Assembly: GCA_977017575.1 (NCBI GenBank)
Contig: CDRNVI010000019.1
Span: 124,001 to 188,000, forward strand
DNA from: Paramoeba atlantica
Taxonomy: Eukaryota; Protista; Discosea
Length of the DNA: 64,000 nt
Direction of reading: 5' to 3'
Shown here piece after piece: positions 1,734-42,421 of this stretch. How positions within the stretch are numbered: the stretch's first letter is position 1; every line of letters starts with the position of its first letter. The notes beneath the pieces are model-generated. The model did not search any database. It worked only from the letters and a program-made list of their open reading frames with translations, and had not been told where the DNA came from. Made by a program: the position numbers and the translations under genes.

Positions 1734-2000
1734 TATCTCCTCGTATAAGTCAGTCTTGTCATTCAGTATTGTAGATAATAATGGACCTCCTTTGCTTTAA
1801 AGCTAAAGTCAAAAGTATGTGTTCTTTAAGCACTTCTCACATTTGTGTATTGTATCACTTATAAGGGACTTTCAACGCGCATACATTCTAAAAATTTAGT
1901 TTTCCATTTTATTAGTAAACATCTCGATCAACCGTGTGATAAACACGTTCGCCATCCTACTCTTGATTCTAAACTACATCCAATCCGCTCCGCCCCTTCC

Positions 2001-3101
2001 TCACCGCAGAACCGACTCCCCATGATGCGTCACACTTGCCGGTCGGTCCAAACCAAGGCCCCAATGAAGATCAGGCTCGTTGGTGCGGTAACTCGGCAAC
2101 CTCGGGGTGAGGTCCCGTCGGTCAAGCATCTCCCCCTCCTCCCCCCTCCCGGGGGTCATCTCCACCACCAGCTCCGGGGGGGCCTCCACGGCATGGGAAC
2201 ACCTCCCCTCGACCCCGGGCGTCATGTGGGCAATCCCACGGGTCTCCCAGGGCGCCACACGCCACCGGGCCCACACCTCCCGTGTGAGGATACACACAAA
2301 CACCACCACGCAGAACCCCGAGATCAGGTGCGCACTCACCAGTGCGGGGATCAAACACCGGTGGTGGTAACCCATCGAGGGGAGCAGGCGGGCCCATATC
2401 ACCCACAGCAGAAACCCCGGGAGCAGCAGCCGGAAGACGATCCAGGTAAGGTAGGTGAGGTAGAAACAGGCCACATAGGGCCACGTCTCGGCACGCCCTG
2501 TGCGCTCCAGCAGCACTTGACAGTTCAGGAAGAGCACCGGGAGCTCGACAAGGAGGAAGTTGGAGACGACAAAGGACCCGGCGCCGCATTGGGGGTTGAA
2601 GATGTGGACACAGAACGGGATGAGGGCCAGGATGTGGTGAACGACAAACACAAGCCACATCGGGACACGGTAAAGGATGATGATCGCGAGGTCGAGGAGG
2701 AAATAGGCCGTGGAGAACGCGACCAGGGCGTGCAGGGGAACGAGGTCGGACGTGCTGAGGGGCTCATAGTCGGATTTCCACTGGATCGTGGTTGTGGTTG
2801 CGATGAATCCAGGTACAACGACGAGGGCGTGCAGGGAGCTGTTGATGCGGCTACACCAATCCGCTTTGTAGCTCAAAGTGAATTTTGAGAAATAGGAGGA
2901 ACCGTAGCGTGCGGTGATGTACCAAGAAATGTAAAAAAGGAAAAGGAATGCGATTAGAGAACCTCCAAGTACAATAGCGTTGAACGTGATGCTGGGACTG
3001 TGACATCCAGGTGAGAGTGAGGCGTCGCACCGCTCGCTATCGTTGAGAAGCACCTGTGGGATAAACACACAAAGATATACGAACGAAAAAGCGAGTTTCA
3101 T
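2001..3101 (-). CDS. TLC (TRAM/LAG1/CLN8) domain membrane protein
   Basis: Multiple TM helices; SRINSSLHA, YFLLDL, FVVHH, LLVELPVLFLN motifs. Confidence 0.8.
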   Translation of the reverse strand: MKLAFSFVYLCVFIPQVLLNDSERCDASLSPGCHSPSITFNAIVLGGSLIAFLFLFYISWYITARYGSSYFSKFTLSYKADWCSRINSSLHALVVVPGFIATTTTIQWKSDYEPLSTSDLVPLHALVAFSTAYFLLDLAIIILYRVPMWLVFVVHHILALIPFCVHIFNPQCGAGSFVVSNFLLVELPVLFLNCQVLLERTGRAETWPYVACFYLTYLTWIVFRLLLPGFLLWVIWARLLPSMGYHHRCLIPALVSAHLISGFCVVVFVCILTREVWARWRVAPWETRGIAHMTPGVEGRCSHAVEAPPELVVEMTPGRGEEGEMLDRRDLTPRLPSYRTNEPDLHWGLGLDRPASVTHHGESVLR

Positions 3102-37266: not shown

Positions 37267-37568
37267 CACTTGGCTGAGCATACCCCTTCCCGAAAACTGG
37301 CGCGATGCCTAGCAGATGAAGTCGCGGTATAAAATTGAAAGTATGAAAGAGGACTTCACGTAAGACAGGGCAGTGCCCAATGAACTTCATTGAATGAAGC
37401 GAAAACGTGTGCAGAATTAAAGAAATCGATGGCTAGAAGAAAATTACGGACTTCTTTATCTTTTTTTATCTCCCCTCCCTCAAATCGCGAACAAGTACAA
37501 TTACATAATTCCCATGATTGACAACAAGACTCGTACAGCACCGTCCCAACAGACAGTTTTCGTGCATA

Positions 37569-38314
37569 CACCCATGGACAGAAGTGTGCCCCCGGCCTGG
37601 CAAATGTCGATTTTTTTACCCGTTTTTTCTCATTTTTGCAGCATTCGAGAGATCTCGTTCCCCTAGCGAAGAGTTTTGCCGCCTTTGCTTCATAGGGACC
37701 CCCTGGTACCCCCTGTTTCCAAAAAACATGGTTTAATTGCCCGTTTTTTTGGAACACAGTCAATTTCTCTAGTATATTATCTTTTTTTCTCCCTGTTTTT
37801 TCTTCATGAGGACCCTGCCTCGCATAAATCATAAACGAAACATCGTTTTGTCGATTTCGGAGCGAACAGAGATAGTCAAACAGCATAAATCCACATAACT
37901 TTGTAGTTTTAAGCCACACAACTATGTAACCCTGACAAAGGCCACAGGAAAGGCGTTTAATGCTCTAAAACGTGCCCCACATAGATAGAAAGTGTTGAAT
38001 TCCATCAAATCTGTTCCTAAACGTATGCAAATAGTTATTCAGACCAATGGGGAGCATTGCGGATATTGATACTTCTTCCTTTTTTCTCATTTTCTCATTG
38101 AAAGGGTGATTTTTTTTCTAGATGTCTAATGCACCATTTTTTGTTTTTGGTCTACTTCGGGGTCACCACCAGAGCACCAGGGGGTCCCTATGAAAAAAAG
38201 GCGGCAAAGCTCTTCGCTAGGGGAACGAGATCACTCGAATGCTGCAAAAATGAGAAAAAACGGATAAAAAAAATGGCATTTGCCAGGCCGGGGGCACACT
38301 TCTGTCCATGGGTG
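37569..38314 (+). mobile_element. 746-bp internally deleted Tc1-like element, 139-bp TIRs, TA TSD
   Basis: TIRs 37569-37707 and 38176-38314 (CACCCATGGACAGAAGTGTG...); TA on both sides; transposase C-terminal remnant inside. Confidence 0.92.
37911..38069 (+). pseudogene. Tc1-like transposase C-terminal remnant
   Basis: KPHNYVTLTKATGKAFNALKRAPHR*KVLNSIKSVPKRMQIVIQTNGEHCGY* matches the Tc1 end pattern SMPRRL-AVI---GG-T-Y; one internal stop. Confidence 0.7.
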
Positions 38315-38589
38315 TATAACGGCGTACAAACAAGATCTCGTAGGCATCTAAAGGTGAACCACGAAACGGAGGGCTAATCGACGATGGCTTTTGCGTTTGA
38401 ACGAAAATTCTTTTGCAAATTCATCAGAGGCTATGTACTGTTTCAGAAAAAAAATCTTTTTTCGGCGGGTTTTGAGTGCTTATGGTGCGCTTTTTGCTTC
38501 ATTTACTACGAACTTTCGGCTCCTCACTTATTTACGGAGCAAGTTGCAGCGACCATGCGCACACGCTTGGCATAAATAATTTTGATTTA

Positions 38590-41458
38590 CTGTGACCCCC
38601 CCTTTAATATGGACAGGGGGTATTCCCCCCCTTTATTATGGACAAATCCGACCGGGCGCCGCGCAGCGGCGCAAATCTTTTTGGCGTACCCTTTTTTTTT
38701 TGTCTCTTTTTTTCTGTTTTTTAGGGTATCTGTAGCTAGATAATTTTGTCAGCTTTCACATACGTAGTTCTTTCACATATGTAGTTCGTCATGTTCATAT
38801 AATTCAGTCATTTTTCAACCTAATGAATTCCGTGGAAGGACCCTTAACCTCTTGGATTAAGGCAACACCCCCAAAGCCACAGGTAGGTAATCCAACAATG
38901 TTGATTACAAATGAGCGCAATGTCCACGCTTCTTTAGATATCCACGTAAAGGAGAAAAGGGGACGAACTGAGCTTAATATATACGAGAAGCGCGAAATCT
39001 GCCGATCGACTCTCTCGGTAAAAAGAATCCGAGAAAAATTGCGGAATTTCGCGAAGCGGAGTATATGAAATCCGTAGCCACGGTATGAGCTACTTTCAAA
39101 AACTCATTGATCGTTCCATGGGGAACAACCACAGGAATCGTGCTTTTAACGTTCGAGGAGGCGACTACAATGATCCCGAAGCAGTCTGCTACAACAAGTC
39201 TGAGGCAATGGAACGGGTACACTGCTCCTGCGTCCAAGCTTCCTCGTTATGGTGTCCCCTCACCAGAAATATCGTCATCGACATGATACGACAAAATACG
39301 GGATTGACTTCAATTAGTGCTTTGGAAGACACTTATGCGAAGTTCAGACGGTACTATGGTTGGGTGTGGTGGCGGTGGGGCAGAATACAGTGCTTAGCCC
39401 CCGCTGATGTGAACTTCAGAATTTCTCGTTGGGCTGAAAAGCTCTACGTTCAAAACACAGTCCGTTGCTACCGTTTCGCGTTTTTCGGGGATGAACCCGC
39501 CATGTTTGTCAATGGAGAGGTGCAAGGGCACACACTTGCTCCGGTAGGGTGCCCGCAACCTAAGGTAGTGGATACAAACCCAAAGGAAACAGTAACGGCA
39601 TTTCTTGCGGGCGTCTATGATTTAGGGGCCGACGAAGTTTACCCGCTCCACCCGACTGTAATTTTTGAGCACGGAGCGAAGCGCAGAGAAAGCTCAACAA
39701 TTTATTCGGAAATGACGAGTTACGCGAATAAATTGAAAGGAATATTTATTGATGTGAGCTCTTCTGGATGGGTGCGAGATGATATATATCCCCGCATGAT
39801 GCACTGTGACCCGCACACAATTCCGGTCGGGTGCACGAAAGCGATCCAAATTCACGACCGTGTATTCAATCGCCTATTTAAGAGGGCGTACAATGAGTTG
39901 CTCAGTGCATGGCGAATACAGAACTCTTCGTGTAAGGTAACTCTTTATTTGGTGCTGGAGTGGATAAAAGAGGCCCATTCGAGAGTGTGGGTAAAGCATC
40001 ACAACACTATTCTTAACGCCGCCCGCAGGTACATCAAGCAATCAGCTACAGAGTATCCAAAGGGCGAGAAGGATCCCGAAAGTGAACCAACCAGAAAAGC
40101 GAAAGTTGAGATAAAAGTCCGTGAGGAAATTTCACCACAAATAGAGTCTTCACGAAATGAGCCGATTGTTGTGCCGGAAACAGAGGAGACTCCTCCCACC
40201 CTGGTTGATACGTGGAAAAAAATTCGACGTCCCAAAAGCTGTCTTACCACGCACGCGGTGGATCAGCTCTTCCAAAACGTAATGGAGGTATATCGGGAAT
40301 TGCCTAATGTAGACAGGCATCTCATGTTCCTAAATACCGGACAGACGCAGTTGATGTTAGGCCTGGGCCGCAAGCCAAAACAGCATATTACATCGGTTCG
40401 TCGAATAGCCGCGGCTTTAATTTTTAATGGGCATTTTATCCTTGTCAATTTCCAGAGGTTTGGGCTAACTGTTTTCGACAGTTACGAAACATATTGTCCC
40501 TCTGCTCGATCTGATTTTCTGAACAGCATCATGATTCACATGCGTCCACTGATAGGTTTCTCTGCGGAGATGAAGATTAAATACGCCGCAGTGCCGCAAC
40601 AGCAACCAATGACGAATGAATGCGGGCTCCATTTGGTAAACAATCTGTGTAACTTGCTTTTTTTGGTTCCCGTGGAGAACAAGCTCACACGCAAAAACAT
40701 CTCAAAAACATGGCGACCATGCGTTCCCGGTACTCTGTCTCATCGTCCTGCCCTCACTGAAGAGCTTCACGATGAGGAAATAATTGACACTCAAGATTGT
40801 TTAGGGCAACTAATGCTTCATCCAGACAATGACCGCGGGGACATGGACACAGAGGGGTGGGATCAGTCAGTAGCGTATGATGATACTTTTGAATTGTAAA
40901 AGGGCTATTATTTTATTTTGTTATGATAAGTTTACGTGGGGGTTTTTCCGTGAGCTCTTAACGTTAGTCTTGTTTTTTCCCGTTGTGAACGTAAGTTCTT
41001 TCTTTCCACCTTTAGTTCATTTGTGTGAAACTTTGTATGAGTAGGAAGTTTGGGATCGATTTTTACGTTAGAACATCTACAATTTAACTGAATGGAACCT
41101 TTATAGCTACACGGAATATAGAGCTGAATGTGAGCATGCATGATTTTTTGCTTGTTGTTAATTTTTTATTCCTAATTATAGTGTACATCAATAATGTATA
41201 TCCTCCATGTATCCTTCACCCTAATGAAGAAGTGCCCCTTCACTCCTCATTGATGCCCTCCTCCCCCGCCCTCTTCCTCTGCTCTCCTCGCCCTCTCTCC
41301 TGGACATGGATTTTACAATTTTGATTTTTTGTCGTATTATAAGTAAAAAAGGCGCCGCGAAGCGTCGCCATTTTTTTTTTCACACCCCTTTCATCGCCCC
41401 CCCCCTTTATTATGGACAAAAGCCGAAAAAGTGTCCATATTAAAAGGGGGGGTCACAG
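38590..41458 (+). mobile_element. 2869-bp pogo-like DNA transposon, 26/27-bp TIRs, TA TSD
   Basis: TA|CTGTGACCCCCCCTTTAATATGGACA ... TGTCCATATTAAAAGGGGGGGTCACAG|TA; encodes transposase-Ulp1 fusion. Confidence 0.92.
38823..40899 (+). pseudogene. pogo-family DDE_1 transposase fused to C-terminal Ulp1/C48 peptidase; +1 frameshift near 39020-39024
   Basis: HTH-like EKREIC...CGISRSGVYEIR across the frameshift; FGDE(D136), TLAPVG, KETVT, SSSGWV, IPVGCTKAIQIHD(D258), VLEWIKEAH; protease H450 (NGHFILV), D465 (FDSY), C513 (QQQPMTNECG); numbering from ATG 39085. Confidence 0.85.
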
Positions 41459-41460
41459 TA

Positions 41461-41765
41461 CTATCCCTTAATAGGGCTACGTGTCACCCCCCCTTTAATA
41501 GGGCCATTTTGCCTGGAAGGCCAAAAAAGATTTCAGGGAAAATGCGAAAAAAATTGTCGAATGCGCCGCGAAGCGGCGTATTTTCTTTTCCGCATCTACC
41601 CCAACAACCAAAAGTGTATCAAAAGGGAGTAGGACCTTGTTTGACAACGATAAAAAAGGCGCCGCGAAGCTGCGCCGATTTTTTTCTTTCATATTATTTT
41701 CCATGTCTCCCCCTTTATTAAGGCCTTTTGCCCAAAATCGGAGTCCTATTAAATAGGGGGGATAG
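41461..41765. mobile_element. 305-bp MITE related to the pogo-like element, abutting its right end
   Basis: TA|CTATCCCTTAATAGG ... CCTATTAAATAGGGGGGATAG|TA (imperfect TIR); subterminal CCCCCTTTA repeats; two GCGCCGC-GAA-GC hairpins. Confidence 0.7.
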
Positions 41766-42324
41766 TAACTAACTTAACAACGCAACACACTCGCTGGCTC
41801 AAGTACAGAAGACTATCCACAACAGCAGACGTTGAAAGCTCTGCGTGATCCTGGTCAGTGTCAATCTGTATTAGAAGAATTATTAAACAAATGTTATCTC
41901 CCAGTCGACTCCCGGCGCAGATTACCGAATTCCGCTGGGGTACCACCCTTGTACCGCGGCCTGTATCATCTACGCAGTCCCTTTGAATAGTCACCCCACG
42001 GCTATCACTAAAAGGGTTGAAACATCCCCAGCCGCACCCACCCGCACCCAGTCGCACACAGTGTATCTTCAACGGCAAAGACTTACGGCAAGCGAAATTT
42101 AGGAGATCCAGAAGGAACACGTTCGGGGTACTACTCCCCGAGATGATAACTTTTTCAGTTAATTTGTACGGGTGCTTCACCATGCGCGTATTTTTGCAGA
42201 ATACAACCCAAAAGAAAGTGAGACCCGTGTAGACTAAAAACCTTTCACAACATGAACTTTATGTCCTTACATTGACATAAAACTAACCCACAGTCCGGTT
42301 TATCCCAAGTGAGGTAAAAAAGAA

Positions 42325-42393: not shown

Positions 42394-42421
42394 ATAAAGA
42401 TACAGTTTCTGTACCTTGTTG
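42394..42421 (+). other. Spliced-leader exon-like fragment (3' 28 nt), no intron donor
   Basis: ATAAAGATACAGTTTCTGTACCTTGTTG resembles the conserved kinetoplastid SL core CAGTTTCTGTAC-T-A-TTG; followed by ATTTATT rather than GTATG. Confidence 0.7.

Follow-up and report, generated by a model that had tools for sequence, protein, structure and literature searches.

A decayed, probably pogo-type transposon in a kinetoplastid-type genome and its family with a transposase fused to a predicted Ulp1/SENP-type protease

Does the 2869-bp element at positions 38590-41458 of the DNA stretch analyzed here (64,000 nucleotides of the Paramoeba atlantica contig CDRNVI010000019.1, in the following called the window) represent a DNA transposon of the pogo type whose transposase carries an Ulp1-like protease? 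An initial annotation of the window had proposed this combination and, in addition, suspected that such a family had not been described before. According to our analysis, the element is very probably a non-autonomous and decayed copy of a pogo-type transposon (IS630-Tc1-mariner group), belonging to a family with a transposase fused to an Ulp1/SENP-type protease. The annotated ends were confirmed, as the terminal inverted repeats (TIRs) match at 26 out of 27 nucleotides with one indel in a T-run as the sole difference, and a TA dinucleotide is located on either flank (Table 1). Three occurrences of the TIR core (a C-run preceding TTTAATA) were counted within the window, compared with a chance expectation of 0.04. 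As likewise annotated, the element hosts the only long open reading frame (ORF) of the plus strand, encoding 604 amino acids (aa) and being the only one on this strand to exceed 350 aa, while the other plus-strand ORFs range from 211 to 347 aa.

The assignment of both domains of this ORF was based on its relatives, on the family profile, and on the predicted fold. A word-indexed search retrieved three relatives of the window ORF in the ENA assembly ERZ24900291, and the matches of the word-indexed homology searches were confined to fragments of the same sample. Three family members pass the gathering score of the Pfam family DDE_1 (PF03184; 22 bits), namely P0002 with 29.8 bits, being 67% identical to the window ORF, P0010 with 24.6 bits, and the ORF of the element copy L010 with 40.0 bits, the latter match covering positions 12-165 of the 177 profile positions. 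Within the family alignment, the motifs FGDE, D-x4-H, and Q-x-H-D, hosting the first, second, and third catalytic Asp respectively, are invariant. The first and the second Asp are separated by 120 residues and the second and the third by 30-31 residues, corresponding to DD30D in P0002 and DD31D in P0010. This spacing is placed inside the range of DD29-56D given for pogo elements and also inside the ranges of Tigger, pogoR, and Lemi (PMC7386202). Furthermore, TA dinucleotides were found at six independent insertions, i.e., at the site shared by the window copy and L002, as well as at L003, L005, L006, L007, and, for the left end only, L001. The annotated pogo-like nature of the element is thus supported by its insertion sites, by the three members above the DDE_1 cut-off, and by the spacing of the triad.

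Based on its fold and its motifs, the C-terminal part of the ORF (~180 aa) is predicted to be a clan CE cysteine protease of the Ulp1/SENP type. An exhaustive HMMER scan with aa 376-560 of the window ORF against 1.84 billion representatives resulted in 13 relatives of this C-terminal piece. Among them is the DDE_1-bearing P0010, its residues 552-720 aligning to the piece with an E-value of 1.8e-12. P0013, which matches the window domain with an E-value of 1e-5, passes the Pfam family Peptidase_C48 (PF02902) with 31.6 bits at a cut-off of 20.7 bits, and P0012 and P0014 are narrowly under this cut-off; the parent contig of P0013 was not found. The annotated triad of H450, D465, and C513 proved to be exact in position, aligning to the catalytic residues of Ulp1. 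Together with Q507, these residues follow the Ulp1 order and are conserved across the family alignment, in which the His is embedded in HF-x-LV and the Asp in DS, followed by a Gln pair and by N-D/E-C-G/A with a subsequent H-V-V-N-N-L.

Comparison of the family profile with all sequences in the PDB gave Ulp2 (5lnb, E 5.9e-4) and Ulp1 (1euv, E 1.1e-3) as top matches, in both of which the four catalytic positions are aligned, with ChlaDub1, SENP5, and SENP8 next in rank. Structure prediction of the C-terminal domain by AlphaFold2 reached a predicted local distance difference test score (pLDDT) of 35 from the single sequence and of 86.6 from the alignment, the latter model having a predicted template modeling score of 0.85. 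The top 50 Foldseek matches of the domain in the PDB are all clan CE proteases (best E 8e-7). Superposition by VIA-align resulted in Z-scores of 13-15 across 150-170 residues to SENP5 (15.0), NEDP1 (15.0), SENP3, Ulp1 (13.9-14.2), and Ulp2 (13.9), and in lower values to bacterial CE effectors (~10) and adenain (8.6). The Ulp1-like character of the C-terminus, as stated in the initial annotation, is therefore backed by the conserved His, Asp, Gln, and Cys, by the Ulp2 and Ulp1 profile matches, by the Peptidase_C48 match of P0013, and by the SENP/Ulp-like model.

Extension of the comparison to further copies showed at least four diverged subfamilies (A-D) within the same assembly, with the fusion present in each of them. 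Subfamily A comprises the window copy and L002, L005, and L006, i.e., copies of 94-99% identity each having a different internal deletion. Subfamily B (L007, L003, and L001) shares ~67% nucleotide identity with subfamily A. Its member L007 exhibits the full layout of helix-turn-helix (HTH) region, DDE core, linker, and protease in a frameshift-broken state, L003 is a deletion derivative of L007 (97-98% match on either side of the deletion), and the piece P0011 spans the junction of transposase and protease. Subfamily C is represented by L009 (P0019), in which a deletion joins the region of the second Asp straight to the Cys motif of the protease. Subfamily D is represented by L010, with a DDE_1 ORF followed by the protease ORF P0016 inside C-run/TTTAAG inverted repeats. 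The element lengths determined are 2869 bp for the window copy, 2889 bp for L002, 2000 bp for L003, 2123 bp for L005, 1727 bp for L006, and 3082 bp for L007. Apart from this assembly, P0010 originates from the unrelated Logan run SRR22388338 and is an intact protein of 784 aa, 33% identical to the window ORF and of the same layout, consisting of a putative N-terminal HTH, a DDE_1 core with DD31D, a linker, and a terminal clan CE domain of the Ulp1/SENP type. Within the family, the linker between the DDE_1 core and the protease has a length of ~60-100 aa.

The initial annotation had considered that the protease region might turn out to be missing from other copies; the fusion was found in subfamilies A-D as well as in P0010, and the copies lacking the protease domain are internal-deletion derivatives. 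Between the subfamilies, the proportion of synonymous differences (pS) amounts to 0.80-0.92 and is saturated, and owing to this saturation non-synonymous proportions (pN) are compared with pS here instead of reporting dN/dS. Within the transposase, pN is 0.17-0.20, and across protease and linker it is 0.30-0.36. As these are far under the saturated pS, both parts have evolved as coding sequence under constraint, and the comparison demonstrates, on the level of sequence, purifying selection on both domains during the divergence of the subfamilies. Given its presence in four diverged subfamilies and in P0010, the fusion is ancestral to the family and not the result of a local capture.

The window copy itself is in a state of decay. 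Of the HTH and DDE_1 motifs that had been assigned to its ORF, D136 and D258 are indeed present. The HTH region, however, does not reside inside the main ORF but in a separate ORF of 81 codons, from which the main frame is parted by a frameshift, and the second catalytic Asp has been lost with a segment of 30 residues that is retained in relatives, including L005 of the same subfamily. P0001, the product of the allelic copy, reads through the frameshift junction in a single frame, and the allele of the window copy bears a different frameshift. The locus is also covered by L002 (ERZ24900291 ctg3969l) with 97-98.6% identity, the same element being inserted there at the identical position. Because the frameshift severs the DNA-binding region and the deletion removes the second Asp, the window copy is unable to move itself; since its ends are intact, mobilization in trans would be conceivable should the genome hold an intact relative. 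Among close copies, we counted in total 9 synonymous and 18 non-synonymous substitutions, numbers too small to be informative and without clear constraint, which fits a decay after insertion.

Several observations weigh against the reading as a pogo-type family with an Ulp1/SENP-type protease. The DDE_1 scores within the family are modest (24-40 bits), and the CENP-B_N matches of P0003 (16.6 bits) and P0019 (18.2 bits) do not reach the cut-off of 21.2 bits. In the Pfam check suggested by the annotation, the window ORF gave no match at E up to 1 and its C-terminal piece none at E up to 10, the expected families being matched by the relatives P0002, P0010, and L010 (DDE_1) and P0013 (Peptidase_C48). 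The catalytic His precedes a Phe in the family compared with a Trp in Ulp1/SENP, and the alignment behind the fold model consists of 13 rows only. All nine copies seen in this genome are broken, with no intact one among them, and an empty-site allele for the family was not found.

A part of these observations would also be compatible with a transposase from a separate deep IS630-Tc1-mariner lineage, merely grazing the DDE_1 profile and standing outside pogo proper. Such a placement would agree with the low DDE_1 scores, with the window ORF being without any Pfam score, and with the subthreshold CENP-B_N matches. HTH_Tnp_Tc5 was not matched by any of the family members scanned with Pfam, homologues were found in two samples only, and the PDB sequences contained no match, neither by phmmer for the window ORF and the N-terminal part of P0010 nor for the transposase profile. 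Nevertheless, the third catalytic residue is an Asp separated from the second by 30-31 residues, like that of Tigger, pogoR, and Lemi, the motifs D-x4-H and Q-x-H-D are typical of DDE_1, and the match of L010 spans nearly the entire profile. We thus consider a separate lineage unlikely and retain the pogo-type assignment.

Concerning the second half of the fusion, the protease-like domain might be a catalytically dead module binding SUMO or ubiquitin-like proteins, or it might cleave the transposase at the linker and not host proteins. The Phe following the catalytic His points in this direction, as do the replacement of the catalytic Asp by Asn in some copies (P0006 and P0008) and the long linker between the two domains. 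The Asn variants, however, belong to copies with other inactivating lesions, and the complete set of His, Asp, Gln, and Cys is retained in the window copy, P0010, P0012 to P0016, and P0005. The fold is nearer to the SENP/Ulp isopeptidases than to the maturation protease adenain. A dead or self-cleaving domain is in our estimation about as improbable as the separate lineage.

Far less likely is the possibility that the C-terminal domain stems from a host SENP gene of which the element captured a piece, specific to a copy or subfamily and without any role for the element. Transposons do capture host fragments, and L003 and L001 are among the copies without a protease domain; yet the domain-less copies are internal-deletion derivatives, as seen from L003 in comparison to L007, the fusion occupies the same position in subfamilies A-D and in P0010 despite the low identity of the latter, and pN within the domain is far below the saturated pS. 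A capture by a single copy was rejected in view of the fusion in all four subfamilies and in P0010. That the ORF is a domesticated host gene and not part of a mobile element, as its open frame of 604 codons and the occupation of the same site in both haplotype-like contigs might suggest, is hardly conceivable and was rejected given the TIRs and the TA duplication, the several dispersed and nearly identical copies with distinct internal deletions, the frameshift, lost catalytic Asp, and differently frameshifted allele, and the substitutions among close copies showing no clear constraint.

For the pogo-type element with its fused protease, we propose a mechanism in which the HTH region of an intact transposase would bind the C-run/TTTAAT repeats, two of which are present per end in the window copy, followed by excision of the element and reinsertion at a TA by the DDD core. 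The direct TIR-core repeat located inward of the left TIR is probably a second transposase binding site in this respect. The fused protease may remove SUMO or another ubiquitin-like tag, a role we deduce from the predicted fold being closest to isopeptidases and from the parallel with Ginger1 and Mutator-like elements (MULEs). Its substrate might be the transposase itself or chromatin or repair proteins at the site, with relief of host repression or support of the repair after excision as the presumed effect. The roles put forward in the annotation, counteraction of SUMO-dependent silencing or processing of the polyprotein, are conjectural as well.

The arrangement of the repeats at the two ends is asymmetric (Table 1). 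The right inner repeat runs in the same direction as its left counterpart and is not inverted, thereby forming a local palindrome together with the right TIR, and the same asymmetry exists in subfamily B (L003 6598-6727). GC hairpins with a GNA loop were found near both ends of the window copy, and hairpins of this kind with different stem sequences are also present in L004, close to its right end, and in the L010 element, close to either end.

Table 1. Positions of the features of the transposon copy in window coordinates, with strand and basis of the assignment
Feature	Position	Strand	Basis or occurrence
Left TA, half of the target-site duplication	38588..38589		TA flanks every family copy with ends seen
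Left TIR (CTGTGA, run of seven C, then TTTAATATGGACA)	38590..38615	+	Same terminus in L002, L005, L006, L007, L003, L001
Inner direct copy of the TIR core (C-run and TTTATTATGGACAAA), candidate binding site	38625..38646	+	2-3 such copies in relatives
Left subterminal GC hairpin, 7-bp stem, GCA loop	38656..38672	+	Direct sequence reading
N-terminal transposase part (HTH DNA-binding region), frameshift near 39040	38823..39068	+	Separate ORF of 81 aa; subthreshold CENP-B_N and HTH_28 matches in relatives
604-aa ORF: DDE_1-type core, linker, Ulp1-like domain, acidic tail	39085..40899	+	ORF and family comparison
First catalytic Asp D136, motif FFGDE	39490..39492	+	Invariant in family alignment
Junction of 30-codon deletion, second catalytic Asp (D-x4-H) gone	39801..39802	+	Segment kept in P0002, L005, L007, P0010, P0019, L010
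Third catalytic Asp D258, motif IQIHD	39856..39858	+	Family alignment
Predicted clan CE Ulp1/SENP-like cysteine protease domain, aa 376-552	40210..40740	+	Model, Foldseek, VIA-align, family profile
Catalytic His H450 (by alignment)	40432..40434	+	Family alignment, Ulp1/Ulp2 profile match
Catalytic Asp D465 (by alignment)	40477..40479	+	Family alignment, Ulp1/Ulp2 profile match
Oxyanion-hole Gln Q507, six residues ahead of the Cys as in Ulp1	40603..40605	+	Alignment
Catalytic Cys C513, motif NECG (by alignment)	40621..40623	+	Family alignment, Ulp1/Ulp2 profile match
Right subterminal GC hairpin, 8-bp stem with one mismatch, GAA loop, then T-run	41351..41369	+	Direct sequence reading
Right inner copy of the TIR core	41397..41421	+	Same layout in subfamily B
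Right TIR	41432..41458	-	Pairs with left TIR
Right TA, other half of the target-site duplication	41459..41460		TA flanks at family insertions

The element is located in a dense, intron-less, and one-directional gene array, with 31 long ORFs on the minus strand of the window. The encoded proteins include importin alpha, a P-type ATPase, a proteasome ATPase, SHQ1, Tdp1, Der1, and Gcd10. A Pfam analysis of 30 neighboring ORFs showed general eukaryotic housekeeping domains only and no kinetoplastid-specific family. A family copy located on a different contig of the ENA assembly adjoins a gene with the REH2 dsRBD family (PF26536), REH2 being a kinetoplastid RNA-editing helicase. The description of the genome as kinetoplastid-type is well supported as regards gene organization, and the label covers this organization and not the exact taxon. 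At 42403-42421, in antisense orientation relative to the gene array, the sequence CAGTTTCTGTACCTTGTTG resembles the 3' half of the euglenozoan spliced-leader exon, with two mismatches to the search pattern; the site may have been left behind by a retroelement associated with the spliced leader. In addition, long ORFs overlap on both strands at 1845-3101 (347 aa on the plus and 366 aa on the minus strand), in a region with a GC content rising to 51% compared with ~43% elsewhere, which may represent a GC island.

Further putative mobile elements were observed next to the transposon copies. Upstream of the window copy, positions 37567-38314 are occupied by an element of 748 bp that is flanked by TA and has long inverted ends (CACCCATGGACAGAAGTGTGCCCCCGGCC...). 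The otherwise collinear L002 is without this element, and its junction resembles an unoccupied site apart from a few additional bases, which indicates a second element of the Tc1/mariner type that is polymorphic for presence. Directly abutting the right TA, a non-coding element of ~306 bp (41461-41766) is delimited by the ends CTATCCCTTAATAGGG and CCTATTAAATAGGGGGGATAG. Its interior contains C-run/TTTAATAGGGCC motifs as well as a pair of GC hairpins, each with a GAA loop (~41563-41579 and ~41659-41677). It looks like a miniature inverted-repeat transposable element related to the pogo-Ulp1 family. Reverse-transcriptase ORFs (RVT_1) lie beside or inside pogo-like copies in L003 (6454-7764), L007 (9145-10546), and L008 (3645-4886), showing that different mobile elements cluster at the same intergenic sites. 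Finally, a lone left end of the subfamily A type (TA, then CTGTGACCCCCCCTTTAATTTAGACAGGGG) is present at position 3463 of L009, 1.3 kb upstream of the subfamily C element, and suggests nested or adjacent insertions.

The family shares features with several known systems. With the pogo superfamily (Tigger, pogoR, Lemi, Passer, Mover, and Fot), it shares the TA duplication and short TIRs (PMC7386202) as well as the order of an N-terminal HTH, putative in the present family, and a DDE_1 core with an all-Asp triad. It differs from this superfamily by the C-terminal fusion of the Ulp1 type, by its strong divergence, by the C-run/TTTAAT end repeats and the subterminal GC hairpins, and by the kinetoplastid-type host. 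In agreement with the initial annotation, which knew of no described pogo-Ulp1 fusion family, our search of the full-text literature revealed no pogo or Tc1/mariner element with an Ulp1 domain, Repbase and Dfam being outside the scope of this search. The pogo survey of Gao et al. from 2020 never mentions a protease and reports extra domains only in the domesticated CENPB, POGK, and POGZ (PMC7386202).

Ulp1-like domains on MULE and Ginger elements, on the other hand, are documented as the annotation had stated (PMC2836005). Ginger1 carries an Ulp1 or OTU domain at its C-terminus, and a role of ubiquitin or SUMO in transposition was suggested for it by Bao et al. in 2010 (PMC2836005). The resemblance lies in an Ulp1 protease (pfam02902-type) at the C-terminus of a DDE transposase (PMC2836005), whereas the transposase of Ginger1 is similar to Gypsy integrases and thus from another DDE superfamily, and the elements are larger and found in animals. 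Ulp1 domains are also on record for Mutator-like elements (PMC2836005) and a C48 peptidase for oomycete Cryptons (PMC3212892). KI-MULEs, CUMULE, and the oomycete Cryptons are therefore comparable as mobile elements bearing a clan CE Ulp1-like protease, but they possess a MuDR-type transposase or a tyrosine recombinase instead, and the protease of CryptonS is a separate protein and not a fused tail. Many MULEs likewise encode their protease separately from the transposase. The family combines two known kinds, pogo transposons and Ulp1-bearing transposons, and does not constitute a new category; a description of it was not found in the literature.

Regarding the host, the annotated view that cut-and-paste transposons are essentially absent from trypanosomatids is in line with a survey of 57 trypanosomatid genomes, from which no DNA transposons were reported (PMC12278014). 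From kinetoplastids, DNA transposons are reported as Merlin relics only, found in Bodo and Perkinsela and devoid of clear ends (PMC8101967). These relics are similar to the present elements as DDE-transposon sequences in non-trypanosomatid kinetoplastids that are often antisense to gene arrays, and differ from them by their ancient appearance and the lack of clear TIRs or target-site duplications (PMC8101967). The sharp TIRs, the TA duplications, the copies of 94-99% identity, and the deletion derivatives indicate that the pogo-Ulp1 family has moved recently. This alters the picture for kinetoplastids, as the present genome contains several subfamilies whose ends are sharp, whose insertions show TA duplications, and whose copies are nearly identical.

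Mutator-like, Ginger1, and Crypton elements have acquired proteases of the Ulp1 type independently of each other, and the pogo type would represent a fourth and unrelated recruitment. An in-frame fusion under purifying selection within a small pogo-type element strengthens the case that the removal of SUMO-like tags aids DNA transposition, and with its single ORF of 784 aa the family offers a compact system for testing this idea. More tentatively, it may be the first pogo-type family with a working SUMO/ubiquitin-like protease that is required for transposition and the first clearly recently mobile cut-and-paste family in Kinetoplastea, a claim that we regard as possible and still short of probable. 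If true, it would provide a natural system for addressing why MULE, Ginger, Crypton, and now pogo elements repeatedly recruit Ulp1 domains.

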